The notes beneath the pieces were generated by a model. That model was not told the DNA's origin. It did no database searches and saw only the letters and a list, made by a program, of their open reading frames with translations. A stretch of 64,000 bases of DNA from Octopus sinensis. Taxonomy: Eukaryota. Both the position numbers and the translations under genes were made by a program. This document shows, in pieces, positions 3,401 through 60,789 of this stretch (positions within the stretch are counted from its first letter, which is position 1; every line of letters starts with the position of its first letter). The stretch is from contig NW_021836126.1 of the NCBI RefSeq assembly GCF_006345805.1, positions 186,001 through 250,000 on the forward strand, written 5' to 3'.

Positions 3401-5163
3401 TTTTGATATTCTGTCAAATGCAATAATTGACAGACATTTCTTTGTAGTAGTCACCACAACATTCGGCTTCAGGTCACTCCTTCGTTTTTCCGGATTTTGA
3501 ATAGGGATTAATAATCCCTATCCCAATGGGAGCAAACAATGATGTAGAAAACAGCTGTTAAAATTTAAGCTATTATCATCGAGAGTGAGTCAAGTGCATA
3601 TTTTAGAAGTTCAATTGGAATTGAATCAGGACTGTTCATATTTAAAGGTAAAAATGCTCTTTTATATTTTATAAAAAATAGCAAGCCTGGTTAAGAGCAA
3701 TGGAGACGGAATGGAATGGTAAGAGCAGGATAAGAGTTCCTCAACTGTGTAAAGCGATCGTTATTGGTAGAAAAGTTATGTCCATATTTTTATGTTTAAT
3801 AGAGATAAATTGTCTTTTAGCACCTTATTAGGCAGTTTCTAAGCCTTCTTCTGAAATTACGAAACTCTTGTATTTTAAGTAGACTTTAATGGCGATATTT
3901 CATCCATTTTTAAGATTTTTCCAAAGAGGGCTTATCGGCTTTTCAGCCCATCAATGATTATAGGCCGCGAACTGCACATTTTATAAAGACATTCATTTTA
4001 GCACCAATTTTAGGAACAGGAAGAATGGAAGGAGTTGTGTGAAGAGCCATTCTGTGTTCACTTCAAAGAATCTGACTTGGCAATTAATTCGTTAATTAGT
4101 TTTTCTTAATTAATAGAGGTCAAAGACAAGTCTCATAAAAATTGGAAATATTATTTTTTTCCATATTTATTAATTTTTCATTAAAAAATTTTGAAAAAGA
4201 TTGAATTCAATGTACTTTTTTCAATTTTTCTTTCCGAAAGAAAACAAAAAAAAGTTACATTATCAATTTGGATTTGTCAGTGGCTGGACCGCGTACCAAT
4301 ATTAATTATTCTCGTGCCATAGAAATTTATTTACGTTATTTTTCATTTTTTGAGCAAATAAAAATAAAAAAGTAGCTTTTCGTATTCATTACTAATTAGC
4401 TCGACTTAAATGAATAAACAATGAATATGTTACGGGAAAAGTCATTAATCTGGGCAATTTTGTTAAGTCCCAGGATTAATGTTAATTATTTAATTTTTTT
4501 ACAAATAGTTAGTTAGTTAGTTAAAGCCGTAATCAGCCGTGTCCGGCCATTGGCTGATCCTGAGTTGTCAAATGCCTCCACGAGTTCGAGTCCAAAGCAG
4601 AGATCGTCCACGAGTCCTTGTCCTGTGAACAATTTGACAAGAGGATTTTCTTAGAAGAGATGATAAAGGGGTAGGATGCCAGGTCTTTAATACAAATAGT
4701 GAATGTTAATTTAATCGGGTTTCGGATTACTTTTTTCATGTACAAAATAAAATGAAAATATTATGTCGCGAGCGCTGCGAGCGACCGAGCGCTGAGAGCG
4801 ATTTTGACGCCTAACAAGCCTGTCATCAACAAATATATTTATTAAATTATTTAAAATTTTAACATGATTTAAATTAAAATTGAAATAACTTAAGTTTTCC
4901 ATTGAATCCCATAAAATAATATATAAGTAGACCTTAATATAAAAAGTAAAATCAATGAATACTGAACGCTAATTTGGTTTAGGTTGTGAGGGGGGTAATA
5001 ATTTGACAGATCTCATTGCTATTTCTCGTTTCAATCTCTAAAATTAGGTCTTCTAATCACAAATGAACTGTGCAGACAGGCTTGCTCCTTCAGAAGATTC
5101 TTGTTTTGACATTTTAATAAATTATGAAGCATTTAGATTTTTTCTCATTATTCTAAAATATCA

Positions 5164-5407
5164 ATTATGAATTTTAAAATATTATTTTATTTATGAAATC
5201 GGTTTTAAAGCTCATTCTGCTTTGGCATCGATTTTAATTTTTGTTATCGAATATATATAATCCCAAATACAAGCCTGGGTATTTGAATTTTAAAATATTA
5301 TGAATTTTAAAATATTATTTTTATTTATGAAATCGGTTTTAAAGCTCATTCTGCTTTGGCATCGATTTTAATTTTTGTTATCGAATATATATAATCCCAA
5401 ATACAAG
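5164..5407 (+). repeat. ~110-bp direct duplication (5164-5273 / 5297-5407) around the first target motif
   Basis: Two near-identical copies of ATTATGAATTTTAAAAT...CCCAAATACAAG are separated by CCTGGGTATTTG plus a short filler. Confidence 0.9.
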
Positions 5408-6384
5408 GCAGCAAACAAAGTCTAGTGGAGCCCTGCGGTCGGCATTGTATCAATTGTGACCGCCCCGGCCACCTCGCATCGTATGGTGGATGCCCTACGG
5501 CCAAAGCTGCAACAGCAGCTAAATGGGCCGCCCGCGCAGAAGCAATGCCTCGGTCTCCTAACCCAACCCGCATGGTAATGGTAAAAGCTAAGCCGGTCAC
5601 GCCTATCTGGAAAGTACGGCCGCTAATAACCCCGTGTGTGGCGGACGCCCATACCCAGACGACGCAAGTCGTTGAGGTTGGTGCGCAGAGCATGCAGGCC
5701 CCTGTCGCCGAGGCTATGAAACCGAGGCCCGTCAGCCCAATAAGGAACGGTACTCAGCAGGCCAAAACGCAGGCGAAGGTAGACTCTCAAAACAAGGATG
5801 CTCTGTTGGAATTTTACCAACGCTGTGTCGACGCACTGCTGAAACTGGGAGTCAAACCCAAGAAGCTAGTAGAGCTCCTATCAGAGAGGAGCTCGTCAGC
5901 AAAATGACCACGCCACTAAAAATCATCGCTGTGAATGCCCGATCTGTCAAGAGACGGCACCTCGACTTCGTTGAGATGGTAAACAGCGGCCATCCTGACT
6001 TAATCGTCGTCAACGAGTCTAAGCTGAAAGAAGGTCAATGCTTCGAATTGCCAGGATACTGCTCCCTTGACCTGAAATGGAGAAATAAGTCTACGCCGAT
6101 CTACGCGCCCCGCTACCCAACTGGGCAGAGGAGAAATCTCCACTAATCGAGAAAGTCATCCTTGATTCCATCCGAACTTTTCGTCGGCGGTCTCAGGTGA
6201 CCGATCTTTTCGTGGATCGCGTCTGAAATTCAATCAGAGAGTGACTCTTCAAAAACCCGGCTCATATATTCCCTTAGGACGAATCTCGGCAGAGCTCGAC
6301 TGTCTTCGCAGTCGTCTCGTTTAACCTCGTCCAACCTTTTTACTTAGTCTCTGTTTTACTTACAATAAAACTTTCCATTCCTTT
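5408..6384 (+). mobile_element. LINE copy E1: 5'-truncated, internally deleted non-autonomous element
   Basis: ORF1 C-terminal part (CINCDRPGHLASYGGC knuckle, stop at 5907) and ORF2 APE N-terminus (IIAVNARS...VNESKL). The sequence jumps at ~6090 to the ORF2 C-terminus (PLPNWAEEKSPLIEKV...VTDLFVDRV*, homologous to PIPPWLEAKTPTVGEI of E2). It ends in AATAAA and a (TTCC)-like tail. Confidence 0.85.
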
Positions 6385-6443
6385 CCTGGGTATTTGAGTA
6401 TTTTGCATTTGGCCATCTTGATTTGTGATTTGGATACTGTTTC

Positions 6444-7604
6444 ATGGTACGTTTGGCTTCTCGTGGTGCAAAGAATAAAGTGAATAAAAATTCAAAATCT
6501 TCCGATTTTCAGGACCAACGGAATACTGTGTGTAAAGATGATATTTCTCTCAAACATGAGACAGAGGTTCACTCTTCCATAGACACCTTGAACAATCGCA
6601 ACGCATTTGAATCGCTCGTCCTCTCTCTGGAGATAAAAAACCCTGCGCTTGGACGGATTAAATGTTTCAATATTTTAACAAAATCTTTGACTGCTCGGAA
6701 GGCTCGTATAACTGCAAAGAAATCGGGGCATTTTACCCTAGAATTCAATAACCGAAGTGACAGGGATTCTTTTGTGAATGACCTGAACAATAACAAGCCA
6801 TTTGGTCATGATGGCCATAAAATCTCGGAATGTTGTTTGCAACCCTCGACAGTAATTTTGAAGGGAATTCCTTTCTGGGTTTCCGAAGAAGACCTGGAGC
6901 TTTACCTAAAGGAGACTCTCCAGCCTGGCTTTTCTTTCCAACGGTTTAATAAAAATGGAAGGAATATGCCAGTTGGAAAATTGACCTTGAAGTCAAGGGC
7001 AGAAGCCACTTCACTTGTCAGAATGGGAATTGAAGTGGGTTTTCAAAAAATACGCTGTGAGTGGTTCAAAAACCCTGCTACAAGATGTTTTCGATGCCAA
7101 AAATTTGGCCACATTTCAAACTACTGCAAAGAGGTAGAAAGATGTCTTTTTTGTGGTGGAGACCATAATATGAAGTTCTGTTCAATTAAAGAAAAAACAG
7201 AGAATAAATGCATTAACTGTGGTTTAAATGGACATTTGGCTTGTTACGGAGGCTGCCCTTCAGCTAAGGCAGCTACTGAACAATTACGCATAAAAAGCTC
7301 AACTAGAGAGCTAAATAACAACAAATGGGTCAAAGCAGAGCCAGTCAAATCTGTATGGGAAAAATCCAAAGTGTTGCATTGCTGTGAATCCGCAACACAA
7401 ACGGATGTTTATGAGGATACTATTATGTCCTCCTTTACCAAAAATTCGGAGTTTACAACTCACGTTAAGCCTCAACCGTCAACCATCGATGTTGAGCTTA
7501 CCTCTATGATTAAAAAAATAATCACTATATGTTGGGAAAAAGGATTCGATATTCACAATCTGTGGCCCCTTTTCTTTGAAGGGCAAATGATTGACCATTC
7601 ATGA
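6444..7604 (+). CDS. LINE E2 ORF1, gag-like nucleic-acid-binding protein, 386 aa
   Basis: Three Cys/His knuckles: CFRCQKFGHISNYC, CLFCGGDHNMKFC, CINCGLNGHLACYGGC. Confidence 0.92.
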   Translation: MVRLASRGAKNKVNKNSKSSDFQDQRNTVCKDDISLKHETEVHSSIDTLNNRNAFESLVLSLEIKNPALGRIKCFNILTKSLTARKARITAKKSGHFTLEFNNRSDRDSFVNDLNNNKPFGHDGHKISECCLQPSTVILKGIPFWVSEEDLELYLKETLQPGFSFQRFNKNGRNMPVGKLTLKSRAEATSLVRMGIEVGFQKIRCEWFKNPATRCFRCQKFGHISNYCKEVERCLFCGGDHNMKFCSIKEKTENKCINCGLNGHLACYGGCPSAKAATEQLRIKSSTRELNNNKWVKAEPVKSVWEKSKVLHCCESATQTDVYEDTIMSSFTKNSEFTTHVKPQPSTIDVELTSMIKKIITICWEKGFDIHNLWPLFFEGQMIDHS

Positions 7605-10234
7605 GTTCATATCTAACTATAATTGCGGTGAACGCACGCTCTCTAAAGAGAAGACGTGCAGAAATTGAGAACATGTTATCTACTAATCCCGTGGACCTTT
7701 TAATTGTGAATGAAACAAAATTAAAACAACAGGATGATTTTTATCTGAATGGCTATTACTCCCTAGATATCAAATGGAAGTCGGGTTCGATAGCTGGAAC
7801 GGGGACTTCTATATTTTACAAATCAACTTTGAGAGTGAAAAATTTGAAAATTGTTTCTGAAGAACTCTGTGAATTTGTCACAATCGATGTTCGACTTGAA
7901 AAAACATGGATTAAAATTGGAGGGATGTATTCGAAATATCTTTCTAAATACCCATCGCTTATCAAGAATTTTTTCGCTGATAAGCACAAGCCATTATCAA
8001 TACTCCTTGGAGATTTGAATGCTAAGTGCTCCTCCTTCGGCTGTATGGGGACTAACAGGGATGGTCTCATTCTTAAGAAACTTTCAACATCCTTTGGATT
8101 TTCAGTCTTCACATCCAAAACACCGAATCATTACTCTCCAGGAGGGTGGGACTATTTGGGCTTGGCTTTGGTGTCTTTGCCTGCCCTTAAACTCTTGGAA
8201 GAACCGATTACTATCAATGACATTGGGAGTGATCATCTGCCGATCTTATATAAACTCAACGTCACCCCGTTGAAGGTTACGCCTACTTTCATACGATACA
8301 ACCTTACTCCCATAAACTGGGATCACTACAGAAAATGTTTTGAAATTTATCTGAACAAATTTGCCCCTCAACTTGGGGATAATTCTTCAGGAGAAGATTT
8401 GGAAAAGTCGAGCAATTTTCTTATTGGCTTCATAAAGTCTTATCTAGAAATATACTCTTCCAAAATCACCTCTAACAGTAAGAAAATTCCGTTGACATGC
8501 AAAAATGTTGCAGTCCTTTTAAAGAAAAAACAATGCCTAAGGAACAAACTTTGTCGTTGTGTGGACTTTCACGACCGATCTGTTCTAAAAAACGAAATAT
8601 TTGCCATTTCCCAGGAAATAAGAAGGTCAACAATTGCTGCTAAGAATAAAGAATGGAAGGCTGAATGCAATAAATTACATAAAGCAAATCCAAACTTTTG
8701 GAAAGTTTTCGGGAAATTATCCACTTCAAAATCCGAGGAAGCAATACCGAAACTGTTAAATCAAGATGGATTCCCTGCTTCTCTTGAAGAAATACCAAAT
8801 ATATTTGGAGACAGTCTTAAAGGAACTCAGGAGGTCAACCCGGACTTACTGTTATCTGGACCAGCACTGTGTCATATGAAAAAAGAATTGGATGGACTCC
8901 TCAGCTCGTTGCCTTTGTGCACGATAGCTATAAGTTGCAAAGACGTGGAGGACGCAATAAAATGCTCGAAGGATAATGCCCCAGGAAGAGACAAGATAAC
9001 AATGCGATTGTTCAAAGAAGCACCGAGGGAACTTTATGAATATTTGAGATGTCTTTTCTCCTGTAGTCTTCATCTGGGATACGTCCCCTCCTCCTGGAAA
9101 TTAACGGAGGTTAGGATGATACTGAAGCCAGGAAAACCTCGCTACTTGCCAACAAGCTATAGGCCGATAAGCCTGATTCCTACCATCAGCCGAATCATGG
9201 AAAGGATATTGCTGTGGAGACTCTCGGAACATGTGGAGAGCAAAAATATTTTAAAAAATGCGCAGTGGGGTTTCCGCAGCAATCGCTCTTGTGGGGACTG
9301 TCATTATACGGTTAATTCGTTAATTATGAAGGCTCTGGATACCAAGGGATCTCTGACGATGGCATGTCTTGACATTTCGAAGGCATTCGACAGTGTATGG
9401 CATTTTGGCCTTCTGAGACATCTGGCGAAGTGTCAGATAGATAGAGAACTGTTTCTATGGCTACAGGACTTCCTCCGCGACAGACGATCAGTGGTTAGCT
9501 TACTGAACCATGACTCGGATGAGCTAAAATTAAAAAGAGGTGTCCCCCAGGGATCAGTACTCAGTCCTCTGTTATTCAACATTGTAATGAGTAATCTACC
9601 TTCTCCAAATGATGTACGGACGGAAATTCTAATATATGCGGATGATGTGGTCATCCTCGATGTTTCACCGAAACCTGCCTTATCTGAACAACGAATGCTG
9701 TCATATATGGAAGAGATCGAACATTGGTGCAGAAATAACATGCTGACTGTCGCACGTGAGAAGTCTGCCCAGTTGAGAATCACAGAAAGTAGAAATCTTA
9801 AAAATTCACCATGTCTGATTACTAACATACCACGACAACATTCAATAAAATACCTGGGATTGCAAATTGAAGAAAATGGTAAATACACTGAATATGCGAA
9901 AATTCGGAAAAAGAAAGCAACAAACGCTCTGTTTTGCCTAAGAAAGTTTAATCTGGAACCAGATACTTTCCTTTATGTTTTTAACACGGTGATCTTACCA
10001 GGACTTATATTTGGAAAAGAGGCATGGTACTTCTCTAGAAAGAGGAGTTCCATTATCGAGAAGTTCGAAAAAACTCGGAGACTGGCGTTAAAAATCGCCT
10101 ACTCCCAAAGCCCGGAATGCCCGATTCCCCCATGGCTCGAGGCTAAAACGCCTACGGTGGGGGAAATCGTTGAAAAAGGCATCAAAAACTACAAACTTTG
10201 GTCAACAGTCACTGGGACTTACCTGCAAAGGTAA
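7601..10234 (+). CDS. LINE E2 ORF2, APE endonuclease-reverse transcriptase, 877 aa
   Basis: APE motifs NARS, NETK, GDLNAK and SDHLPI. RT motifs SYRPISL, LDISKAFD, GVPQGSVLSPLLF, YADD and KYLG. No RNase H or C-terminal knuckle is evident. Confidence 0.97.
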   Translation: MSSYLTIIAVNARSLKRRRAEIENMLSTNPVDLLIVNETKLKQQDDFYLNGYYSLDIKWKSGSIAGTGTSIFYKSTLRVKNLKIVSEELCEFVTIDVRLEKTWIKIGGMYSKYLSKYPSLIKNFFADKHKPLSILLGDLNAKCSSFGCMGTNRDGLILKKLSTSFGFSVFTSKTPNHYSPGGWDYLGLALVSLPALKLLEEPITINDIGSDHLPILYKLNVTPLKVTPTFIRYNLTPINWDHYRKCFEIYLNKFAPQLGDNSSGEDLEKSSNFLIGFIKSYLEIYSSKITSNSKKIPLTCKNVAVLLKKKQCLRNKLCRCVDFHDRSVLKNEIFAISQEIRRSTIAAKNKEWKAECNKLHKANPNFWKVFGKLSTSKSEEAIPKLLNQDGFPASLEEIPNIFGDSLKGTQEVNPDLLLSGPALCHMKKELDGLLSSLPLCTIAISCKDVEDAIKCSKDNAPGRDKITMRLFKEAPRELYEYLRCLFSCSLHLGYVPSSWKLTEVRMILKPGKPRYLPTSYRPISLIPTISRIMERILLWRLSEHVESKNILKNAQWGFRSNRSCGDCHYTVNSLIMKALDTKGSLTMACLDISKAFDSVWHFGLLRHLAKCQIDRELFLWLQDFLRDRRSVVSLLNHDSDELKLKRGVPQGSVLSPLLFNIVMSNLPSPNDVRTEILIYADDVVILDVSPKPALSEQRMLSYMEEIEHWCRNNMLTVAREKSAQLRITESRNLKNSPCLITNIPRQHSIKYLGLQIEENGKYTEYAKIRKKKATNALFCLRKFNLEPDTFLYVFNTVILPGLIFGKEAWYFSRKRSSIIEKFEKTRRLALKIAYSQSPECPIPPWLEAKTPTVGEIVEKGIKNYKLWSTVTGTYLQR

Positions 10235-10422
10235 TTCTATACTGAGACGTTGGGGTCCCTCTTTTCTTTTTGTTTCGCGGAAGAAGTCGGTAAGCAAGCC
10301 TTACCGTTTCATTAATTATTACCCCACATACTATTCGTTGTTACCTAAATAAAGTTGTTACCTTACCTTACCTACCTACCTGGGTATTTGTATTTTGCAT
10401 TTGGCCATGAGAATAATTGGGC

Positions 10423-11591
10423 ATGACACGTTTCGTTTCTCGTGGTGCAAAAAATAAAACTATCAAAACTCAAAATCTTCTGTGTCTCAAGAGCTTGAAC
10501 GCAAAGATGAAATCCGTATCAAAGATGAGGAGGGGTCACACTCCTCTCAAGTCTCTTTGAACAATCCAAACTGTACTGAGTCTCTTGTCCTCTCGCTGCA
10601 GATAAAAAATTATGCGATTGGACGAATAAAGTCCTTTAATATTCTAACCAAATCCGAGACTGCACAGAAGGCCCGAATTACTGCCAGGAAGTCTGGGGAC
10701 TTTACCCTCGAATTCTCAAATTCTAGTGATAGGGACTCGTTTGTGAATGACTTCGAGTATAACAAACCATTTGGCCAGGACGGCCATTATATTTCTGCGT
10801 GCAGTCTGCAACCATCGACCGTAGTCTTGAAGGGAATACCATCTTGGGTCTCCGAGGAAGACCTGGATCTTTACCTCAAAGAAATTCTCAACCCCGGTTT
10901 TACTTTCCAACGGTTCTACAAAAATGGACGGAGTATACCTGTTGGAAAGTTGAGTCTGAATTCGAGGGCAGAAGCCACTTCGCTTGTAAGGATGGGAATC
11001 GAAGTGGGATTTCAAAAAATACGATGCGAATGGTTTAAAAACCCAGCAACAAGATGCTTTCGCTGCCAACAATTTGGTCACATTGCTAACTTCTGCAAAG
11101 AAGTGGAAAGATGTCTTTTCTGTGGTGGTGATCATAATATGAAAATGTGCCCGATTAAAGGAAAAACTGAGAAAAAATGTATAAACTGCGGTCTGAGTGG
11201 GCATTTGGCTTGCTACGGTGGCTGCTCTTCAGCTAAGGCAGCCACTGAACAACTAAAAAAGCAGCTCAGTGCCAGGGACAGACTGGCCAAAGCAGAACAC
11301 TCAAAAACTGTATGGTCAAAAGCGGAGGCCGTTGAATCTGTATGGCGAAAACCCACAATTTCCCGCTGTTTTGACTCCTCAACGCAAACAGATGTTAGTG
11401 AAGACGCAACTTTGCCTCCCAATACACAACACACAGAGCCTCCAACCCGCTTTAAGAGGAAAGCACCAACTATCGACGTTGAGCTTACCTCTATGATTCG
11501 CAAAATAATCGCTATATGCGATGAAAAAGGCCTCGATATCAACAATCTGTTGTCCCTTTCTCTTGGAAGGGAAAGGATTGATCAGGCGTGA
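10423..11591 (+). CDS. LINE E3 ORF1 gag-like protein; probable ATG at 10423 with a 1-nt frameshift in an A-run near 10460
   Basis: MTRFVSRGAKNK at 10423 is homologous to E2 MVRLASRGAKNK. The track ORF from 10482 carries three knuckles. Confidence 0.85.
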
Positions 11592-14218
11592 GCCCCTTTC
11601 TGTCTATTATCGCTGTGAACGCACGTTCTCTAAAGAGAAGGCGTTCAGAGATTGAGGATATGTTATCCCATAACCCCGTGGACCTTTTGATCGTAAACGA
11701 AACAAAAATCAAAAAACATGATGATTACTACTTGGATGGCTATCGTTCCCTTGATATTAAGTGGAAGCCGGGCTCGATCGCTGGAACAGGCACTTCTATC
11801 TACTACAAATCAACTCTAAGGGTGAAAAATCTAAAAATTGTGTCCGAGGAATTGTGTGAATTCCTCACAATCGACGTCCTTCTGGAAAAAGGGTGGGTAA
11901 CAATCGGAGGGATGTACTCAAAATCCCTTTCCAATTATTCATCGCTTATCAAGGACTTTTTTGCCGATAAACACAATCATTTGTCAATACTCCTCGGGGA
12001 TCTAAATGCCAAATGCACATCTTTTGGCTGTCTGAGAACCAACAGGGATGGCATCATTCTTAAGAAGCTTTCAGAATCTCTCAGTTTCTCGGTCATCACA
12101 TCAAAAACCCCAAATCATTACTCACCAGGAGGGTGGGACTATTTGGGCGTAGCATTGGTCTCTATGTCTACTCTTCAATTTATGGAACAACCGTACACCT
12201 TAAATGATATTGGAAGTGACCATCTACCAATTTTATACAAACTCAACCTTGGACCTTTAAAGGGTAAACCAACTTTTATACGATATAACCTCTCGACTAT
12301 AAACTGGGAACACTACCGAAAATGTTTTACACTTTATCTGAGCAATTTCGCTCCTAAACTTGACGAAAATTCTTCATCTGAGGACCTCGAGAAGTCTAGC
12401 AATTCCCTTATTGGATACATAAAGTCTTATCTGGAAACATATTCTACAAAAATCGTCTCAAACAATAGGAAAACTCACATGCCAAACATGAATGTTGAAA
12501 TCCTACTAAGGAAAAAACAATGTCTAAGGAACAAACTCCGGCGCTGCGCAGATTTTCGTGACCGGTCCGTTTTGGAAAGTGAAATCTTCACCATTACGGA
12601 AGAAATAAGAAAATCGGCGAAGGTGGCGAAGGATAAAAAATGGAATACTGAGTGCAAAAAGCTACATAAAGGAAGTCCAAATTTTTGGAAGGTCTACTCG
12701 AAATTAACCTCGACGTCTGAGAAAACTATACCTAAACTGCTAAAACAAGATGGATCCCCTGCATCTCATGAAGAAATCCCGAACATATTTGCTGATAGTC
12801 TCAAAAGAATACAAGAAGTCAATCCGGATACAAATCTATCTGATTCAGCTTTGTTTGATATGGAAAAAGAGTTGGAAGACAATCTTAGCTCATTACCAAT
12901 GTGCTCGGAATCTATAACGTGCAAAGACGTGGAAAATGCAGTTAGATACTCCAAAAATAACGCTCCGGGAAAGGACAAGATAACCATGCGCATGTTCAAA
13001 GAAGCTCCCAAGCAACTTTACGAATATTTGGGATGTCTCTTCTCCCGCAGTGTGAGCTTGGGATACGTCCCTTCTTCATGGAAACTGACGGAGGTAAGGA
13101 TGATACGGAAGCCTGGAAAACCTGGTTACTTGGCGACAAGTTATAGGCCTATAAGCCTAATTCCTACCATCAGTCGAATAATGGAAAGGGTAATGTTTGA
13201 ACGACTCTCTGAACACGTCGAGAGAAATGGTTATCTCAAAGACGTGCAGTGGGGCTTTCGGAGGGGTCGTTCCTGTGCTGACTGTCTTTATACACTCAAT
13301 TCGTCGATTGTAAAGGCTCTGGATTTCAAAGAGTGTCTGACAATTGTGTCTCTAGACATCTCAAAAGCCTTTGATATGGTTTGGCACCTCGGTCTCCTTA
13401 GACATCTGGCGAAGTGTCACATAGACAAAGGACTATTCCTATGGCTAAAAGACTTCCTCCGCGACAGGCGCTCTGTGATAAGCTTTCTGAACTATGACTC
13501 GGATGAACTGAAACTTAAAAGAGGCGTCCCTCAAGGATCAGTCCTCAGTCCTCTATTATTCAACATTGTGATGAGCAATCTGCCGTCTCCTGTCAACACA
13601 CGGACGGAAATTTTGATATACGCCGATGATGTTGTAATCCTTGACATTTCATCGAAACCTGCCTTATCCGAACAAAGGATTATATCATATATGAATACAG
13701 TGGAGCAATGGTGCGATGAAAATATGTTCATTATTGCGCGTGAGAAGTCCGCATTACTGAGAATCACAGAAAGCAGAAATTTAATAAATTTACCGTGCCT
13801 GATCAAGAACATACCTCGACAAAACTCAATTAAATATCTTGGCTTGTTCATCGATGAAAAGGGAAACTATCTCGAAAACGCAAAATTAAGTAAAAGGAAA
13901 GCAACTAATGCTCTGTTCTGCCTGAGGAAGTTAAATTTGGAGCCTGATACTTTCCTCTACGTTTTCAATACGGTGATCCTACCGGGACTACTATACGGAA
14001 AAGAGGGATGGTACTTCTCTAAAAAGAAGGACACCATCTTAACTAAATTTGAAAAGTCTCGCAGGCTCGCTTTGAAGCTTGCTTACCACCAAAAAGTTGA
14101 AGATCCAATCCCCCTGTGGCTTGAAAGTAAATCCTCCATGGTCGGTGAAACTGTCGAAAAAGCTATAAGTGGTTATAAATCCAACTCAATTGTCACTGGG
14201 ACGTACCTGCAGAGGTAG
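11588..14218 (+). CDS. LINE E3 ORF2, APE-RT, 876 aa, GTG start
   Basis: Uninterrupted ORF with the same APE and RT motifs as E2 (YADD at ILIYADDVVIL). Confidence 0.95.
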   Translation: MSPFLSIIAVNARSLKRRRSEIEDMLSHNPVDLLIVNETKIKKHDDYYLDGYRSLDIKWKPGSIAGTGTSIYYKSTLRVKNLKIVSEELCEFLTIDVLLEKGWVTIGGMYSKSLSNYSSLIKDFFADKHNHLSILLGDLNAKCTSFGCLRTNRDGIILKKLSESLSFSVITSKTPNHYSPGGWDYLGVALVSMSTLQFMEQPYTLNDIGSDHLPILYKLNLGPLKGKPTFIRYNLSTINWEHYRKCFTLYLSNFAPKLDENSSSEDLEKSSNSLIGYIKSYLETYSTKIVSNNRKTHMPNMNVEILLRKKQCLRNKLRRCADFRDRSVLESEIFTITEEIRKSAKVAKDKKWNTECKKLHKGSPNFWKVYSKLTSTSEKTIPKLLKQDGSPASHEEIPNIFADSLKRIQEVNPDTNLSDSALFDMEKELEDNLSSLPMCSESITCKDVENAVRYSKNNAPGKDKITMRMFKEAPKQLYEYLGCLFSRSVSLGYVPSSWKLTEVRMIRKPGKPGYLATSYRPISLIPTISRIMERVMFERLSEHVERNGYLKDVQWGFRRGRSCADCLYTLNSSIVKALDFKECLTIVSLDISKAFDMVWHLGLLRHLAKCHIDKGLFLWLKDFLRDRRSVISFLNYDSDELKLKRGVPQGSVLSPLLFNIVMSNLPSPVNTRTEILIYADDVVILDISSKPALSEQRIISYMNTVEQWCDENMFIIAREKSALLRITESRNLINLPCLIKNIPRQNSIKYLGLFIDEKGNYLENAKLSKRKATNALFCLRKLNLEPDTFLYVFNTVILPGLLYGKEGWYFSKKKDTILTKFEKSRRLALKLAYHQKVEDPIPLWLESKSSMVGETVEKAISGYKSNSIVTGTYLQR

Positions 14219-14375
14219 AAAAGAAAAAAAAAAAAAAAAAAAAATTTACTTGAGGGGGTCTCTTTTTTTTCTGGGAAGAAGTCGATAGGGTAGTCCTATT
14301 GTTTCATTATACAAACTCCCCCCTAACCTTTAACCCTTCTCTGTTTCCAATAAAACTTCCTATTCCTCGTTGTGA

Positions 14376-14905
14376 ATGAATACGTGGAGCAATGGTGCGA
14401 TGAAAATATGTTTCATTATTGCGCGTGAGAAGTCCGCATTACTGAGAATCACAGAAAGCAGAAATTTAATAATTTACCGTGCCTGATCAAGAACATACCT
14501 CGACAAAACTCAATTAATATCTTCGGCTTGTCATCGATGAAAAGGGAAACTATCTCGAAAACCGCAAAATTAAGTAAAGGAAAGCAACTAATGCTCTGTT
14601 CTGCCTGAGGAAGTTAAATTTGGAGCCTGATACTTTCCTCTACGTTTTCCATACGGTGATCCTACCGGGACTACTATACGGAAAAGAGGGATGGTACTTC
14701 TCTAACAAGAAGGACACCATCTTAACTAAATTTGAAAAGTCTCGCAGGCTCGCTTTGAAGCTTGCTTACCACCAAAAAGTTGAAGATCCAATCCCCCTGT
14801 GGCTTTAAAGTAAATCCTCCATGTCGGTGAAACTGTCGAAAAAGCTATAAGTGGTTATAAATCCAACTCAATTGTCACTGGGACGTACCTGCAGAGGTAG
14901 AAAAG

Positions 14906-14937
<32 letters not shown>

Positions 14938-15074
14938 ACTTGAGGGGGTCTCTTTTTTCTGGGAAGAAGTCGATAGGGTAGTTCTATTGTTTCATTATAC
15001 ACAAACTCCCCCCTAACCTTAACCTGTAACCCTTATCTCTGTTTCCAAGCAATTCCTATTCCCTATTCCTTTCC
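14376..15074 (+). repeat. Indel-rich duplicate of the E3 3' end (13691-14370)
   Basis: Direct repeat with many 1-nt indels and a somewhat different tail. It is either a 5'-truncated extra insertion or an assembly overlap. Confidence 0.85.
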
Positions 15075-15334
15075 ACGGGTATTTGTCAATTTATGAATTT
15101 TTATTGATCGCATCTAAGAAATTGAGTGATCGCTCGCTGCGCTCGGTCGCTCGCAGCGCTCGCGACTATTAGCTTAAAAAAATTTAATCGGGTAGACTCA
15201 TTATTTAAGCTTGACATCTCATTATTTATGCTTAGAAAATTTAAATTTAAAATAATCAATTCTAATTAAAAAGTTACATTTTTAAAATCTCTAAAATTTC
15301 ATTATATCTTAATAATAAATGGTATGGTGTGGTG

Positions 15335-15395
15335 TCTGTCTGTCTGTCTGTCTGTGTTCTGTCTGTGTGTCTGTCTGTCTGTCTGTCTGTGTGTG
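15335..15395 (+). repeat. (GTCT)n/(GT)n microsatellite near the Helitron 5' end
   Basis: GTCTGTCTGTCTGTCTG..., read directly. Confidence 0.9.
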
Positions 15396-15419
15396 CACAC
15401 CAACTTCAAATTGGCAATA

Positions 15420-16490
15420 CGATGTCCTCGACTTACATGATGAGGTCCTTAAAACCTTCCCCCCAAAAAAATTAAAAAAAAATTTTCTGCATTTGGTTAA
15501 AATGAACAACTACAATGTCCTCGACTTACATGATGAAGTCCTTAAAACCTTCCCCCCAAAAAAAATTAAAAAAAATTTTCTGCATTTTGGTTAAAATGAA
15601 CAACTACAATGTCCTCGACTTACATGATGAAGTCCTTAAAACCTTCCCCCCCAAAAAAATTAAAAAAAAATTTCTGCATTTTGGTTAAAATGAACAACTA
15701 CAATGTCCTCGACTTACATGATGAAGTCCTTAAAACCTTCCCCCCCAAAAAAATTAAAAAAAATTTTCTGCATTTTGGTTAAAATGAACAACTACAATGT
15801 CCTCGACTTACATGATGAAGTCCTTAAAACCTTCCCCCCCAAAAAAATTAAAAAAAAATTTTCTGCATTTTGGTTAAATGAACAACTACAATGTCCTCGA
15901 CTTACATGATGAAGTCCTTAAAACCTTCCCCCCAAAAAAAATTAAAAAAAAATTTTCTGCATTTTGGTTAAAATGAACAACTACAATGTCCTCGACTTAC
16001 ATGATGAAGTCCTTAAAACCTTCCCCCCCAAAAAAAATTAAAAAAAAATTTTCTGCATTTTGGTTAAAATGAACAACTACAATGTCCTCGACTTACATGA
16101 TGAAGTCCTTAAAACCTTCCCCCCCAAAAAAATTAAAAAAAAATTTTCTGCATTTTGGTTAAAATGAACAACTACAATGTCCTCGACTTACATGATGAAG
16201 TCCTTAAAACCTTCCCCCCCAAAAAATTAAAAAAAAATTTTCTGCATTTTGGTTAAAATGAACAACTACAATGTCCTCGACTTACATGATGAAGTCCTTA
16301 AAACCTTCCCCCCCAAAAAAATTAAAAAAAAATTTCTGCATTTTGGTTAAAATGAACAACTACAATGTCCTCGACTTACATGATGAAGTCCTTAAAACCT
16401 TCCCCCCAAAAAATCAAAAAATTATTTTCTGCATTTTGATTAAAATGAACAACGCGAATGTCCTCGACATTCATGATGAGGTCCATTAAA
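15420..16490 (+). repeat. Tandem array of ~94-bp units, 11 full copies plus a partial
   Basis: Unit AATGTCCTCGACTTACATGATGAAGTCC...AACAACTAC starts at 15420, 15514, 15608, 15702, 15796, 15890, 15985, 16081, 16176, 16270, 16364 and 16457. Copies differ mainly in homopolymer length. Confidence 0.97.
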
Positions 16491-16714
16491 ACCTTCAAGG
16501 CAAAAATCTCACGTATTAAGAATATCCTTGATGAAAACGACAGCGAGAATATTAACAATGATGAACTCCCAATTATTCGCGATAAAGAAATTCAATTCAT
16601 CCTATGTTTTTCTCTTTAAAATTAAATGCATATATCATTATCGACCATGAATCAAAATTAAAGCTATTATCATATTTGACTTTGACAGAATGTGCAATCA
16701 CAGATTGCACGACT

Positions 16715-22184: not shown

Positions 22185-22303
22185 GGTTACAATTAGGGTT
22201 AGGGTTGGTTACGTTAAGCCTTAGGGTTTGGTTAGGGTTAGGGTTGGATTGGTTACAATTAGGGTTAGGGTTGGGGTTAGGGTTTGGTTAGGGTTAGGGT
22301 TGG
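22185..22303 (+). repeat. Interstitial degenerate (TTAGGG)n tract
   Basis: TTAGGGTTAGGGTTGG blocks, read directly. Confidence 0.85.
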
Positions 22304-24109: not shown

Positions 24110-25300
24110 GAGCCCTCCAGCCTCACGGATTGCGAAACAGTTGCCGCGGATTACGGCAATAGAGAGACGTTGAAGAAGCCAAAAGGACTCTCTCTGGTCG
24201 TCCTCCTTTTGGCGATTCTTCTCCCCAAACAGCGTAGAAAACAAAGCGACACTCGGCCAAAGACCCCAGAGGTCTCAACGGCGGCTGTGTTGGTGAAGTT
24301 CGGGGTGAGTTCTTCGTACAAAGAACGACATACAATCTCGTCCCACTGGCGCTGGTAGTGCTCAGACTCAGGCCGCCTCGAGTAAAACCGGGCCTTCCAT
24401 AAGAGACCTGCCGCGGCAAAATCTGCAGTCAAGATGGTTTCGGAGAACGATGTCTAAGAGAGTGCGGGAGGCAGAATGAGAGGACAGATAAGCGGAAGAG
24501 CCAAATCGGAACAGGATCTTAGACCAAGGGCCGCTCAGCGCACAGGTAAGGTCGCTGAGACCAGCCAGAATCGTCAAAACAAGATTGCATAGGGAGCTCA
24601 TACCGAGCGTAAGGATATAATCCAAATCAGATAGGAGGTCACTTCTGTGGAAACAGGGTGCACATCTTAGCGTGGATAAATTAGACTTTTCGGTAATACG
24701 AACGTCTGGAAGAATATTGCGGCAAACAGAGGCGGCGGCAGAGAACAAACTTTGTTGAAGGTGGATATTCACAATTTCAGATTTATTTGCGTTAATAGAA
24801 AGGCCAATGGCCGAGAGGGATAGCAGGATAATCCGGAGGTCGTCAAAAACAAACTTCGGGAGGAGCGCAAATAGTTGCGTCGTCTAGGTACCAAATGTTT
24901 ACAGGGGATTGGACAGAATGGGGGAGACATTCACGAAAAAGATACATTATTGTTAAAGATGAAAATTATGAAGTATGTGAATTGGCTTTTTCATTAAAAG
25001 CTTTAATTATTTTAAATTTTTAATAATTAAAAAAAGATTTATTTGCATTAATGGATAGGCCAATGGCCGAGAGGGACGTCGTCAAACATAAGTATGCTTG
25101 GGTATGCGAAAGGAGCCATTTCGCGGCAGTAAGTGATCCCGTCTGATGGAGTTAAAAGCATTAGATACGTCCAGTTTGACCATGATAAACTCCTCGGAAG
25201 ATTCTGACAGTTCACGAAAGGAATGGGCCGCAGCCTCGCAACCTTGAAACGCCGACACCAAGTTGAGCGGGCAGATAATTTGGAGACAAACAGCATGACA
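24110..25300 (-). mobile_element. Decayed CRE-like LINE (RT and RLE pieces)
   Basis: VKLDVSNAFNSIRRD at ~25150 and AAVETSGVFGRVSLCFLRCLGRRIA at ~24250. Confidence 0.75.
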
Positions 25301-30489: not shown

Positions 30490-31100
30490 ATCATGGAAGA
30501 TATTGGCACCTGTCAAACTTGTAAAGGCGGGTCCGTACGTAGTTGATGGCTACAACTGCTGTCACATACCCTGGAAACCGGGGTCAATATATGGCACGGG
30601 AACTAGCCTCTTCTACAAGCCGTACATCGCTTGGCAAAGTTCAGCTTTATGTTCTTGTAGCCTATCTGAATTCTTTCAAGTAAGGATTTGCATAGGTAAC
30701 TTTACATTTTACCTAGAGGCGATGTATTCGAAGAACTTTAAAAGTATTCCTGGCACGTACGGGAGTTCTTTCGAAAGCATCCGAAGGCGATGTTTGTTGG
30801 GGATCTGAATGCTTGGTTTCAGGGTAATTAACGCGCATGGTTTGGCTCTGAAGACGCTGGTTGAAAACCTCGGGCTGGAAGCAAGATTTCAAGTGAGCCA
30901 AACCATATCGACTCGCGAGGAGGACGAGCCTGGGACTTGCTCTGGTCAGCCCTGGAATGCTCCCGATTAACCAGTTTGAACATAGGTCCCACACATGTAC
31001 GGAAAAATTTTGATTCCTGCTCTGTGGTGACGAATACAGTCGCCTCACAACAAAAAATATTTGGGATCTGCACAGTCTTACCCATCATGTTGAGTCTCAT
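30490..31100 (+). mobile_element. APE fragment of the same LINE family as E2/E3
   Basis: DGYNCCHIPWKPGSIYGTGTSLFYK compared with E3 DGYRSLDIKWKPGSIAGTGTSIYYK. Confidence 0.75.
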
Positions 31101-41725: not shown

Positions 41726-41984
41726 TTTACTCCATTATAATTCAATAATCATGATTAAAAAAGTAGCTGAATATAAAAAATAAAAGTAATGTAAATTTTC
41801 TTATAGCTTGTAAAATAGATATAATAAATATGTATTTATTTTAAAATTATAATAATTTTCCTGTGCATAAATACAAAGAACCCTGTATTTGATTGTTAAA
41901 ATAATTATTGTGAAAAAATTGGAAAAGACCAGAAGATTTGTGTTGTGTTGTGGTGGTGGCGTTGCGGAGTAGCAACTTTTTTTT

Positions 41985-44900
41985 ATGTATTCAGTCAGTT
42001 TGTGTATTAAAAATTCTAAACTTGGTAATTTGACAATCATTAACATATTCAATGGAATAGATTGTGTTAGAAGAGCGAGGATTTCTCGACGGCATACTGG
42101 CGATTTTATTCTGCAGTTTAAGAATTTGGACGACTTTGAAGGGTTCAAACAATCTTTGGAGGTTAGAAGTCCCTTTGGACAAGGTGGACATGAGGTGGTA
42201 AAAGTTAAGCTGCTTCCTTCCACTATTATTCTAAGAAATGTTCCGACATGGATAGAGATGGATGAATTAAAAGATTTTCTCAAAACAAAGTTGACAGGAG
42301 AGTTTCAAGTTGAAAGATTTGTACGCCGTGAAGTTATTTTACCTATTGTTAAGCTTGTCCTAACAAGCAGGGGAGAAGCAGAATCCATAATCAGATTGGG
42401 ATTGATTATTGGGTTTTTAAAGATAAAGGCAGAATAGTTCATAAAACGAGAAATTCAATGTTTTCGTTGTCAGCAGTTTGGACATATTGCTCGGTTTTGC
42501 AAGAACTTGGAAAAGTGTTTACATTGTTCAGGACCATATAGAAGATCGGAATGTAAAGAATCACGTGATTTGAGAAAATGTGTTAACTGTGGATCGACTA
42601 CACATCTAGCGAAGTATGGAGGCTGTCCGAAAGCATTAGAAGCTCGTCGTGAGAAGATGAAGAAATTTGTAGAGAAGCCAAGAATCTCACATAAAGAAGA
42701 TAAAGAACCTGCCAGATTAGGAAGTAATAATATTCCAAAGAAAGCTAAACTTGATTTTCTAAATGGACGGACAAGTTGGAATACTGCAGCGGTCGAAAAG
42801 AAGGCAGAAGATGCTATTACACAGACAGAAGAACCTGCAGAAGAGAACAAAAATAAAATCTCAACATAGATGATAAGTACGAAATGTCAACTAGATTACT
42901 CACAAAATTTGGAGAAATTAGAAAAAAGCATTATAGAAGTAACAAAAACAAACAAGGATACGAAGCTTTTACTGGATTTGGTGGCGATTCTAAGAAAAGG
43001 GATCAGCCACCAAAAAAATCAGAAGTAATCAGGATAACCCTGATCAATGCCCGCTCTCTTAGAAAGCGGGCCTCAGAGCTGACTGCATTGGTCAGCACAG
43101 TGTGTATGGATGTTTTTGATGGTAAATGAGACAAAGATCAAGAAGGGTAGTTCCTTTAAACTCAATGGATTTTCATCAATTGATATTCCATGGAAGGATG
43201 GTTCTATTTCTGGAACTGGAACTTCAATTTATTATAGAACTAATTTTAAGACAAAGAGGGCTAGAATTATTGAAGAAGATGTATGTGAACTAGTCAGCGT
43301 TTAAATACAAACAAATATTGGATGGATAACAATTGGAGGTATTTATTCGAAGAAATTACGTGAATACCCATGGATTATTGATGAATTCTTTAACAAAAAC
43401 GTGAATCCGATTTTGGTTGGGGATTTGAACTCGAAGCATGTTGATTACGGGTGTGTTACAACAAACCAAGATGGAAAATGTCTTGTAAAGTGGATGAAAT
43501 CAGGAGAACTGAAAATATTGACGTCGGCAGAAATAAATCACTATGCAACTTATAGTGGTGATAGACTTGGACTGTTCATAATGCCTCAAAAGATGAGTGA
43601 AATGTGCAATCCTTCATATATTGAAAATGACGTAGAAAGTGATCACATTCCACAAACGATTGAATTAAGAACTGGCCCGGTTCACACACAGCACATATTC
43701 GTTAGATATGATATCAGTAGAATTGATTGGAATCACTTCAATTTTTTCATCAGAATGAAACTTGGTGGTATAGATTCTTTGAGGATTTCGAAACCGAAAG
43801 ATATCGATAACCTGGATAACAAATTAAGATGCTTATTACTGAGTTATCTGGAAAATTATGGAAAAAGAAAAAATCTCCTACAGCAGGAGAATATGATAAT
43901 AGGAGTAGAAGAACGTTCTCTACGTCAGGAGAAGAATAAATTAGAAAATAAGTTAAGGAGGTGTTGGGATTTCTTTGACTCCCAAGAACTTAAAGTTCAG
44001 ATCAAGTTAATAAAGAGGAAGATAATAGATGTTGTAAAGAAGAATGAAGAAAAAATATGGAAAAGGGAATGTTCAAAGCTACATCGACAGAATCCAAAAT
44101 TTTGGAAACTATTTGCAAGAATGGTTTCGCCAAGTAATGAAAAAGAAGAAATTTCTCTGAAATCAGATGATGGTTTCACTATTCCGAAGGAAGAAATACC
44201 GGATATATTACGTAAATAATTGTCCAGAATTCAAGAAACTGATCCAGCCACCTTTATTCCACAAGAAGTGCAAAATACAAGAAGTAATTATAAAGAAACG
44301 TCGAAACTGAATAGTCCCTTGTGCCAACCTATAACACAAGAAGAAAAAATACTGCGATAAAAAGTTGCAAAAATAAAGCACCAGGATGGGATTTATTCCA
44401 ATGAGTATCTTCAAGAATGCGGACCAGATTTTAGTTGGATTACTAAATATATTATACAATTCCTCGTGGAGTTTTGGACATGTTCCGTCGACCTGGAAAC
44501 GAACAATTGTACGTATGGTCGTGAAAAAAGGAAAGCCTAAGTCAAAAGCAGATAGCTATAGGCCAATTAGCTTAATCTGCTCAATTTCGAAAATTATGGA
44601 GAAAATTGTTTTCAATCGTCTCTCAAGGCTTGTTGAGGTTAATAATTTTCTCTCTGACAATCAATTGGGTTTTCGACATAAAAAAGGGACTGGAGATTGT
44701 CTCAGAGAGCTAAGATCTGCAATTGATAGTTCGAGGAGAAAAAAGGAATTTCTTACAATAGCGTGCTTGGATATAACGAAGGCCTTTGACAGTGTTTGGC
44801 ACTACGGACTTCTTGATACGTTATCAAAAGCAGGAATTGGGAGAACCGCATTATTATGGATAGAAAACTTTCTTTCAAGAAGGAGGTCGTATATACGTTT

Positions 44901-45710
44901 GGAAATTTAATTTCTAAGAAAATTGAATTACGAAGAGGGGTTCCGCAGGGATCAATTCTCAGCCCGCTACTCTTCAATTGTGTAATGAGTGAGTTACCAA
45001 AAACTGAGAGCATAAATAGTCGTATGATTATTTATGCTGATGACATTCTTGTGCTTGATTCAAGCATAAGTAAACAAATTTCATGGAAAAGGGTAGAAAC
45101 CCATATAAAAAACATTGGGAGGTGGTGCCAAAACAATGGGTTGACTCTGTCAAGAGAAAAATCAACAGTCACATGGATTGCAAGTAAAAGAAAAAATATT
45201 GATGAATATGTAAATACAGGAGATATAAAAAACTCTGGAAAATTGAAGTATCTCTGAGTATCGATAGATCGAAGAGGATCTTTTAAGGATCATATCAAAA
45301 CACGAAGAGAGAAAGCTACAGGAATGTTGAAATTTTTAACTCGATTTCATTTGGAGCCTGAAACTTTCCTTTTTGTGTATTCTACATGTATTGAGCCATT
45401 CTTGATATATGGCTATCAAGGATGGTATAGATCCGAAGAAAGTAGCATTTTTGTAAAAAAATTGGAAAAGACCAGAAGATTTGCTATTAAATTGGCATTT
45501 GGATCGGACTTAAATTCAAAAATCGAAAATGCTTATGACGTTAAAGTCAGAAGGATAGAAGATTTGTTACATCACTTGTGGAAATTATGATGTAATTTTT
45601 TCTTTTGGGTATATGCGAAGAAGAGACATGTGGTGTCTCATAAAATGACCCTATACAATGAAATCAAACCCACATTAATTAGCCTCTTGTTCTGCTTTTG
45701 GCTTTTTTCC
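41985..45710 (+). mobile_element. LINE E4: degenerate, 5'-truncated relative of E2/E3
   Basis: Broken ORF1 (CFRCQQFGHIARFC, CVNCGSTTHLAKYGGC) and broken ORF2 (INARS, WKDGSISGTGTSIYY, GDLNSK, SYRPISL, GVPQGSILSPLLF, YADD). 3' hairpin at 45623-45639, then AATAAA and a TTGT-type tail. Confidence 0.9.
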
Positions 45711-46689
45711 TAACATTAATTTATGGGTTTGTTGGAAAATAAAACTTGTCTTGTTTTGTCGCTTCTCGGCCTTTTGGCTTTGATCAAAGTGTAGTATCTG
45801 TTCTTTCCAGCTTTATATCTGGGACGCCCTTACACGCGGCAAGATATAATGCTTATTTTTGTGCCTTTGTGTGTCCTGCGAAGCTTCCTAACTCCATTCC
45901 ACGCGTCCTCCCGGTATTGCATTACTTTCGGGTTGGGCGCATTCCCTTTTGGGAATTTTATTTTTTTAAAAGTGATTAGTTTATTACAAAAAGAATTTTA
46001 TTTTTTTAAAAGTGATTAGTTTATTACAAAAAAGAATTCGGTCAAGTGTTGAAAGCTTCATGGAGGGGAAGACAACGCGGCTTTGAACGTTATTTTAATA
46101 TGTCTGATTTTTATACACTTTCTTTTACTTACATGTATTCACAATATTATCCCCTTCAGCTCCTCCCTTCCAAGATGCATTTGGTGGAGTGCACAGGCTA
46201 TAATCCACAAAGATAGAATATAAGGAAGACTTTAGTACATTTGGTGGAGTGCTCGGGCTGAGGTTCTAGCCAAGGAGTGACTCTAACGCTTCCTCCACCA
46301 ACCTTCAATCAGCAAAATATATAAACCCGAAGCTCAACCGTCAACACACCAGTCAGGAACCTCACTATGCTGGCTCGATTCAGCCAGGTACTCCGAATTT
46401 GTTTGTTTTCTGGATCGCATTCTGCAGCTTCCAAAAAAGGGTATATGTTTTTCTTGTATCAGAATCAATAATGAGGTAACTGTTTAGCGATTTTGAAAAT
46501 ATGCTCACCATTTTTAAGGTCAAAATGCATGGTAATTTCATAGGCTTGATCGCTTTCATGATAAACCTTTTCACTTTTTGAATACGGGCAATACGTTTGC
46601 TTTTTTCTAAGTAATAACTCTTTTGCTTTTTGATATGATCGTTTATAAAATCCTGAAGTCTTGTCTCTGAGTTTAAGGCGTGTTTCAGA

Positions 46690-60771: not shown

Positions 60772-60789
60772 GCTGAAATAAACAGTTTG

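Follow-up and report, generated by a model that had tools for sequence, protein, structure and literature searches.

How do several divergent retrotransposons come to lie head to tail at one point of a genome, with copies of the same short motif between them? The question is raised by a stack of long interspersed nuclear elements (LINEs) in a 64-kb stretch of Octopus sinensis DNA (VCDQ01001570.1:186001-250000, assembly GCA_006345805.1), which is referred to below as the window. An earlier interpretation, made from the letters of this stretch (the sequence-only reading), had proposed a new sequence-specific retrotransposon system, the members of which insert one after another at a dedicated target. 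Our analysis indicates that the motif is indeed target DNA. A target shared by the whole family is not supported by related copies at other loci, and we lean, tentatively, towards a target-site duplication that is peculiar to this locus.

The stacked LINEs and their junctions

The stack consists of four head-to-tail LINEs, E1, E2, E3 and E4, all on the + strand. E1 (5409..6386, +; tblastn) belongs to a GC-rich lineage and is both 5'-truncated inside the first open reading frame (ORF1) and internally deleted; it retains the C-terminal part of ORF1, ~63 codons from the start of ORF2 and the 3' untranslated region (UTR), and ends in the tail ...AATAAAACTTTCCATTCCTTTCC. The ORF pieces left in it are open. 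E1 is 98.7% identical to a full-length copy at another locus (L088, see below), and its ORF2 N-terminus is identical to XP_029656756.1 of O. sinensis. E2 (6399..10380, +) is full length and intact, with the 5' leader TATTTTGCATTTGGCCAT, a hairpin in the 3' UTR and the tail (TTACC)2(TACC)2. Its ORF1 (6444-7604, 386 amino acids) contains three CCHC knuckles and has weak RRM similarity, while its ORF2 (7601-10234, 877 amino acids), which overlaps ORF1 in an ATGA stop/start, encodes an endonuclease and a reverse transcriptase with every catalytic motif of both present. The two intact ORFs that the sequence-only reading had ascribed to E2 are thus confirmed.

E3 (10391..14368, +) is also full length, shares the 18-nt 5' leader of E2 and has the tail ...AATAAAACTTCCTATTCCTC. 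It is not intact: the ORF1 ATG (10423) is out of frame, and ORF2 (11588-14218), which is open, has a GTG start where E2 has ATG. The sequence-only reading correctly listed these three elements and missed the fourth. E4 (14376..15074, +) is a 5'-truncated copy of the E3 lineage that comprises the last ~700 nt (blastn, 94.7% identity to 13691-14366) and ends in ...TTCCTATTCCCTATTCCTTTCC; when changes are polarised with E2 as the outgroup, it carries several frameshifting indels and one stop codon. Decay is greatest in E4 and nil in E2, with the two ORF defects in E3. The tails of these elements are short TTCC/TACC-type repeats downstream of AATAAA, and the earlier remark that each of them ends in CC holds for E1, E2 and E4, the E3 tail ending in CTC.

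At the left edge of the stack the flanking CAAG is joined directly to E1, the 5' junction of which has no duplication. The E1 tail, ending in CC, is followed by the spacer TGGGTATTTG and two extra bases, AG (6387..6398, +), and then by the E2 leader TATTTTGCATTTGGCCAT. The same spacer without the AG (10381..10390, +) lies between the terminal CC of E2 and the TATTTTGCATTTGGCCAT of E3. The E3/E4 junction (14368/14376) is of another kind, with no motif: the CTC of the E3 tail is followed by a 7-nt filler, GTTGTGA (14369..14375, +), and then by an internal position of E4. The terminal CC of E4 is followed by ACGGGTATTTG in the right flank. Spacers thus precede both full-length units (E2 and E3) and are absent before both 5'-truncated units (E1 and E4). 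With the exception of E3/E4, the units are separated by spacers and have the same sequence on their 3' side, that is, TGGGTATTTG at 6387 and 10381 and GGGTATTTG at 15077. The outer junctions, CAAG/GCAGCAAAC and TTTCC/ACGGGTATTTG, share no repeat, so no single duplication surrounds the whole stack.

The DNA of E2 and E3 is 75% identical, with dS of 1.2-1.4 and dN/dS of 0.11-0.16 in both ORFs. E1, E2 and E3 are deeply divergent lineages, in agreement with the sequence-only reading, and E2 and E3 are old and evolve separately. Despite a dS above 1, the motif and the next 18 nt are identical in E2 and E3, the sole difference being the AG indel at the boundary of motif and leader; the remainder of the two 5' UTRs is not alignable. 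The hairpin, which follows GAAGAAG in the 3' UTR, shows compensatory changes between E2 and E3. Folding of the whole 3' UTR gave z-scores that are not significant for E2, E3 and a decayed relative, E5 (see below), and a value of -2.4 for the 3' end of E1.

Target origin of the motif

The 12-mer CCTGGGTATTTG has three matches in the window, all on the + strand (5274-5285, 6385-6396 and 10379-10390), against ~0.26 expected, and three or more matches occurred in 0 of 100 shuffles. The 9-mer GGGTATTTG has four matches against 0.44 expected, the fourth of which lies at 15077-15085; its chance of occurring at one prespecified position is ~4e-6. The recurrence described by the sequence-only reading is thus far above chance. 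That reading had taken the copy at 5274 for the left flank of E1. E1 starts only at 5409, and this copy of the motif lies 123 bp upstream, in the sister unit of a tandem repeat (period 134 and 1.8 copies in Tandem Repeats Finder (TRF); the unit is present 2.1 times).

Unit 1 of this 134-bp repeat (5150..5273, +; TRF, and blastn 95% to 5287-5407) ends in ...CCCAAATACAAG and is followed by an uninterrupted motif (5274..5285, +). An empty paralogous site is therefore present in unit 1, where CAAG/CCTGGGTATTTG is contiguous (5270-5285). Unit 2 (5286..5408, +) is a 123-bp copy of 5150-5273, 95% identical to unit 1, and runs up to ...CAAG, with the LINE stack directly after it; the stack is thus inserted exactly at CAAG^CC. 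The empty site forms the centre of an imperfect 21-nt palindrome (5250-5270 / 5279-5299, 71% complementary, with an 8-nt spacer). On the other side of the stack, the right-flank target copy ACGGGTATTTG (15075..15085, +) has AC where the other motif copies have T. Next to it (15086..15166) a third, partial unit of the repeat begins with TCAATTTATGAATTTT (compare 5161-5175), and the right arm of an inverted repeat comes after that.

These observations indicate that the motif is target DNA, and not element DNA or a product of chance, because its LINE-free copies in unit 1 and in the right flank run on into the host repeat, because LINE remnants retain 3' ends and not 5' ends, and because the AG indel marks the join of duplication and element in E2. 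The most plausible reading of the motif is a target-site duplication, repeated between stacked elements. On this point the sequence-only reading is borne out, both by the uninterrupted motif of the sister unit and by the indel at the motif/element boundary. The target is not a known RNA gene: searches with Rfam of the window, and with permissive Rfam settings of both flanks, gave no match for the target, a U2 snRNA being the only match. A resemblance of motif and leader to the spliced leader, 5S and U1 was considered and rejected as too short to carry meaning. The possibility that the 134-bp duplication is itself a long LINE-made target duplication was likewise rejected; units 1 and 2 adjoin without any insertion, and a third unit begins in the right flank.

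The host segment has an architecture of its own. A 38-bp GC-rich inverted repeat has its left arm at 4765..4802 and its right arm at 15129-15166 (blastn, the left arm matching 15166-15129 at 94.7%), and the two arms bracket a segment that is ~740 bp long once the LINEs are subtracted. The trinucleotide TAT stands on the outer side of each arm. The two arms may be the terminal inverted repeats of a small element. The window has no further copy of them, and neither the rest of the window nor ~75 kb of paralogous loci yielded another 134-bp unit.

Relatives and fusions elsewhere in the genome

The paralogous loci are four other O. sinensis loci (L085-L088, ~75 kb in all), a small sample that provides one clean 3' junction of the E2 lineage outside the stack. 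This junction belongs to the copy at L085, which is 96-97% identical to E2 (93% at the protein level in the endonuclease) and 5'-truncated near nt 87. It reads ...AATAAAGTTACCTACCTACC/AATAAAGAAACCAATC (in short form ...TACCTACC/AATAAAGAAACC), and the copy is flanked by a 7-bp repeat of its own, AATAAAG, present at both the 5' and the 3' junction. The L085 copy is split by two nested insertions of ~1.9 and 2.9 kb (7767-9639 and 11248-14190 of that locus), and its ORF2 remnant is recorded in RefSeq as 'uncharacterized protein LOC115227140'. The 3' junctions of the related lineages at L086 and L087 read ...TTCATTCATT/ATTACAATAAAT and ...CCTTCCTTT/ACGTGTTTGATA, respectively, and the motif does not stand after the 3' ends of the E1-lineage copies at L088.

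None of GGGTATTTG, the 18-nt leader and the left half-site CCCAAATACAAG occurs in the ~75 kb of L085-L088. The motif follows no 3' junction in the small sample outside the stack, which includes those of L085, L086, L087, the E1-lineage copies and a further LINE (c) of L088, and E5. The 3' flanks of the L085-L088 copies are mutually unrelated, and there is no common target across the related lineages. Sequence-specific APE-type LINEs, that is, LINEs with an apurinic/apyrimidinic endonuclease, are recognised by the presence of most family copies at one target, and the sequences of this small sample do not appear to have that distribution. Random flanks at other copies, which the sequence-only reading had itself named as the result that would speak against a sequence-specific system, are what these few loci display, with 0 copies at the motif, and its suggestion that E2 could serve as a site-specific integration tool finds no support. 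A family-wide target is weakened by these data and no more than weakened, because the sample is small and because R1 also has off-target copies (PMC2718515).

The clade also concatenates readily, as is shown by a second stack, at L088, and by a fusion of E5 with a small nuclear RNA. L088 (VCDQ01007076.1) contains, in this order, a satellite, an E1-like element reduced to its last 164 nt (b), an H2B-like retrocopy, the LINE c and a full-length E1-like element (d). The parts are joined directly, tail to 5' end, with no clear spacers. The H2B-like ORF is complete (Pfam Histone, 2e-12), and LINE c is truncated inside ORF1 with an intact ORF2; the c family has a normal ORF1 at L087. The segment 5186-8602 of L088 can be described either as a multi-template chimeric retrocopy or as a LINE with its ORF1 replaced by H2B. 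The 5' UTR and first codons of d (8603-8660, AAAAACTTGCAAT...ATGGCACCTAAG, MAPKK...) are similar to the start of the H2B copy (5186-5225, AAACTTGCAAAT...ATGGCACCTAAAG, MAPKV...); a histone gene may have supplied the E1 lineage with its 5' end.

E5 (41985..45757, +) is a decayed relative of the clade, with amino acid identities to E2 of 41% in ORF1 and 37-50% in ORF2. Its tail, ...AATAAAACTTGTCTTGTTTTG, runs directly into nucleotide 1-2 of a full-length U2 snRNA (45758..45947, +; Rfam RF00004, 118.9 bits, model positions 1-192). The join looks like a chimeric retrocopy of LINE and U2, or else like an insertion where U2 begins. The arrangement recalls the U2-specific LINEs Keno and Utopia, in that the LINE is directly followed by U2 sequence. 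In those elements, however, the site is at nucleotide 38/39 and the U2 sequence starts at nucleotide 39 (PMC4640811), whereas E5 is joined to a complete U2 at nucleotide 1-2, a structure more in keeping with a chimeric retrocopy than with targeting of U2. Upstream of E5, the segment 41908-41959 consists of a 33-nt copy of the E5 ORF2 3' region (45451-45483, 97%) and a TG-rich, tail-like run, and may represent a second head-to-tail pair, of which it would be the very short upstream unit. A likeness of the preceding, AT-rich flank (41869-41907) to the empty site was set aside as unreliable (0 of 500 shuffles in a narrow test, p = 0.037 in a wider one).

E3/E4, E5/U2 and the L088 stack are thus direct fusions of different RNA copies in one orientation, and they carry signatures of template switching by the LINE reverse transcriptase. 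Such switching, including double template jumps, has been documented for LINEs (PMC2104539). Given the stacking at L088 and at E5/U2, head-to-tail order alone is therefore uninformative about target specificity here.

The proteins of the clade contain the Pfam domains Exo_endo_phos / Exo_endo_phos_2 and RVT_1 (1e-40), and N11, E38, D138/N140, D211/H212 and YADD are all present in E2 and E3. Together with the 5' truncations, the 3' tails, the CCHC knuckles of ORF1 and the lack of long terminal repeats (LTRs), the predicted APE endonuclease and reverse transcriptase identify the elements as non-LTR retrotransposons of the APE type. The ORF2 proteins of R1, Tx1 and L1 bear a C-terminal CCHC motif, and no such motif is found in ORF2 here. 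A PDB sequence search returned just generic L1/R2 reverse-transcriptase matches and retroviral nucleocapsid knuckles and assigned no clade.

An exhaustive HMMER search of a library that represents ~15 billion public proteins identified XP_029653915.1 of O. sinensis, 94% identical to residues 25-399 of E2 ORF2, and, from related lineages, three more O. sinensis proteins. A locus reached through one of these proteins (L089) matches the window without a difference over 29,441 bases, which assigns the window to VCDQ01001570.1. Among the best 150 matches, those from outside Octopus have ~25-31% identity over the full length and uninformative names, so the octopus clade appears to have no relative closer than ~30% identity outside Octopus within that set. 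A first protein search of E2 ORF2 by word index had given a best match of 26% identity and missed XP_029653915.1; two Logan contigs that it returned (L001 and L002) proved to be unrelated elements. Exact look-up of the E2 ORF1 and ORF2 proteins found no record, because the genes are unannotated. Scans of metagenome and viral sequences with the 18-nt leader gave 81 and 1 matches, respectively, attributable to chance, with 0 preceded by the motif and 0 coding for a LINE.

Other features of the window lie outside the stack. Just to its right, a (TGTC)n run (15333-15394) precedes a 94-bp satellite (15418-16496, 11.4 copies, 96% matching), and a degenerate interstitial TTAGGG-like telomeric repeat is located at 22193-22301. 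Further LINE-family fragments occur at 30521-30955, 33320-34774, 52320-53417, 24371-24883(-), 61664-62074(-) and 63221-63973(-), none of them at the motif; the one at 30521 shares 55% identity with the L088-c / L087 family in the endonuclease. Putative remnants of a Tc1-like transposase and of a retroviral-type integrase were recognised by eye at 28395-28619 and 50018-50486(-), and these remnants and the LINE fragments suggest a repeat-rich region. Host-gene-like ORFs (54246-57327 and 60573-60797(-)) resemble a WD40 protein, an SF3B3/RSE1-like beta-propeller and a PP2A-like phosphatase exon. The SF3B3-like ORF is ~46% identical to database SF3B3 fragments, with Schistosoma among the matches, which is odd for an octopus gene; it may be a paralogue or a pseudogene.

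Routes to the stack and what they would mean

The explanation towards which we tentatively lean is that the E1-E4 pile-up reflects a target-site duplication peculiar to this locus, which was regenerated at full-length insertions, and that the stack grew by re-insertion and by template switching. In this scheme the target strands would be nicked 10-12 nt apart in CAAG^CC TGGGTATTTG, and each full-length insertion (E3, E2) would gain a copy of (CC)TGGGTATTTG ahead of TATTTTGCATTTGGCCAT, where the element proper begins. Together with the untouched left flank, the new copy would recreate the site upstream, and the terminal CC of the tails could pair with GG at the primer end. From the decay pattern (most in E4, two ORF defects in E3, E2 intact and the E1 pieces open) we infer an order of three events. 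Target-primed reverse transcription would have begun on a defective E4 RNA. A template switch to an E3 RNA, at its 3' end, would have left the 7-nt filler, and copying to the E3 5' end would have made the first duplication. E2 would then have entered the upstream copy of the duplication, adding two untemplated bases (AG) and regenerating the site. Finally, a deleted E1 RNA would have entered the same site, been 5'-truncated and joined at CAAG with no duplication, so that the site was destroyed and the stack capped. The site may have been re-used because it was regenerated and apparently favourable, with its palindrome centre and CC microhomology; the ascertainment of an odd locus is another candidate reason.

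Several observations weigh against this explanation. Three hits on one phosphodiester are hard to square with an endonuclease that also cuts GGTT^AATAAAG (L085), and the E3/E4 junction requires an extra mechanism, template switching. The motif spacers occur at one locus only, and the placing of the E2/E3 5' end at TATTTTGCA derives from the stack copies alone. The right-flank copy departs from the others in its AC for T. In addition, L088 is without obvious spacers, and stacks in this genome may arise in single events.

The last point leads to an account that we consider unlikely overall, albeit a serious contender, in which the whole stack stems from one target-primed reverse transcription that passed from E4 to E3, E2 and E1 by serial template switching. 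After reaching a complete RNA 5' end (E3, E2), the enzyme would have gone on to copy the 12-nt overhang that the staggered break leaves on the top strand and would then have engaged a new LINE RNA instead of sealing the gap. The chimera of b, H2B, c and d at L088 shows that the same genome holds a structure that is hard to build by separate insertions, the c family having its own ORF1 at L087; the fusion of the E5 tail to nucleotide ~2 of U2 and the tail-to-internal E3/E4 junction with its filler point the same way, and double LINE template jumps are on record (PMC2104539). The account would also explain why spacers occur only with full-length units. Untemplated addition at the jumps would suit the extra AG, microhomology would suit the shared CC, and endonuclease specificity is not required, which is consistent with L085. 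Yet the junctions of L088 are without clear spacers, and a cDNA of ~9.7 kb, three switches and two overhang copies would be needed at once. The unequal decay of E4 and E3 would have to come from the source RNAs, the outer ends of the stack have no duplication, and we know of no precedent for the re-copying of an overhang.

The proposal of the sequence-only reading, in the form of a family specific for (CAAG)CCTGGGTATTTG in a multicopy host repeat (for instance one with terminal inverted repeats, like Tx1D as the host of Tx1L), with other copies off-target or secondary, we judge improbable. At least three lineages at one nucleotide position, in a repeat unit within a segment bracketed by 38-bp inverted repeats, speak for it, and it could appeal to the many R1 copies outside the 28S rRNA gene target (PMC2718515) and to the single clean E2-lineage 3' junction elsewhere. 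That junction, however, lies at an unrelated site with its own AATAAAG repeat, the E1-lineage copies of L088 are off the motif, and the related lineages have no common target. The motif and the 134-bp unit are, moreover, absent from the rest of the window and from the paralogous loci, and the H2B- and U2-bearing stacks demonstrate stacking without a dedicated target. About as improbable is the idea that TGGGTATTTG is the transcribed 5' terminus of the E2/E3 lineage itself, the stack having formed by template switching or tail-directed insertion and the identity of the flanks by homology-assisted joining or from an old 5' remnant. Conservation of motif and leader (30 nt) between E2 and E3 where the other 5' UTR is not alignable would follow naturally, as would the missing motif at E3/E4, where the downstream unit has lost its 5' end, and the full-length E2/E3 copies compared are those of the stack. 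What speaks against this idea is that unit 1 and the right flank have the motif without a LINE and with host repeat after it, although LINE remnants keep 3' ends, and that the AG indel falls exactly at the motif/leader boundary. A weaker argument comes from a shared TTGCA box, which at L088 is 4-6 nt away from where H2B and d begin and in E2/E3 is 4 nt away from TATTTTGCA, a spacing that would make the motif extra to the element; the H2B and d ends may both derive from H2B. An origin at the DNA level, by unequal crossing-over, gene conversion or a mis-assembly that joined separate insertions, is very improbable: a tandem-repeat host can misalign and the assembly is a draft of contigs, but the units are at least 25% divergent, lie in one orientation and are joined at exact termini, the spacers are identical, and a collapse or chimeric join would not give three precise tail-to-5'-end joins.

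The locus-specific duplication with re-insertion has its closest counterpart in R1. In tandem arrays of R1 a target duplication lies between units and results from insertion into the 5' duplication (PMC2718515, PMC5932611); it measures 14 bp, and 33 nt in a D. melanogaster array (PMC2718515, PMC5932611). Like these arrays of Drosophila ribosomal DNA (rDNA), the octopus stack has head-to-tail APE-type LINE units separated by identical copies of a target duplication, with precise 3' junctions, variable 5' junctions and 5'-truncated members (PMC2718515, PMC5932611). It differs in that R1 resides mostly in the multicopy 28S rRNA gene, whereas the octopus target is a low-copy 134-bp repeat, and in that the octopus units represent three deeply divergent lineages, the single other same-lineage copy examined lying elsewhere. 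With template-switch chimeras such as L1/U6 and the bipartite and tripartite MGL chimeras of Magnaporthe, the stack shares same-orientation fusions of RNA copies, a full-length upstream transcript next to a 5'-truncated LINE, and multiple jumps (PMC2104539, PMC4476161). The published chimeras, in contrast, are without internal target copies and have one flanking duplication, whereas the octopus stack has internal copies and no outer duplication.

A further comparison is offered by the octopus LINEs' setting inside a segment with inverted and tandem repeats and a duplicated target. Tx1L of Xenopus is an APE-type LINE found, as a rule, at one site in Tx1D, a repeat with terminal inverted and internal tandem repeats, where its target is duplicated. 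The octopus host segment, in contrast, has a single copy in the window, and the small sample of other loci gives no sign of a family-wide preference.

A dedicated site-specific LINE with an intact copy would, if true, be a candidate for targeted integration, and the evidence does not support it. The mechanisms that we invoke in its place, tandems separated by target-site duplications and template-switch chimeras, are both already known. An undescribed failure mode of target-primed reverse transcription, in which the overhang is recopied and a new LINE RNA engaged, repeatedly, is a doubtful prospect; if it is true, one event would multiply both the elements and the target duplication, providing a route to tandem LINE arrays without a sequence-specific endonuclease. 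What remains is a clade of octopus LINEs in which at least one member, E2, is intact and which is markedly prone to head-to-tail concatenation, fusions with H2B mRNA and U2 snRNA included, together with one stack in which a target duplication recurs between units. Such loci suggest how tandem LINE arrays may start without rDNA-type specificity, which bears on the origins of satellites and repeat-rich regions in cephalopod genomes.

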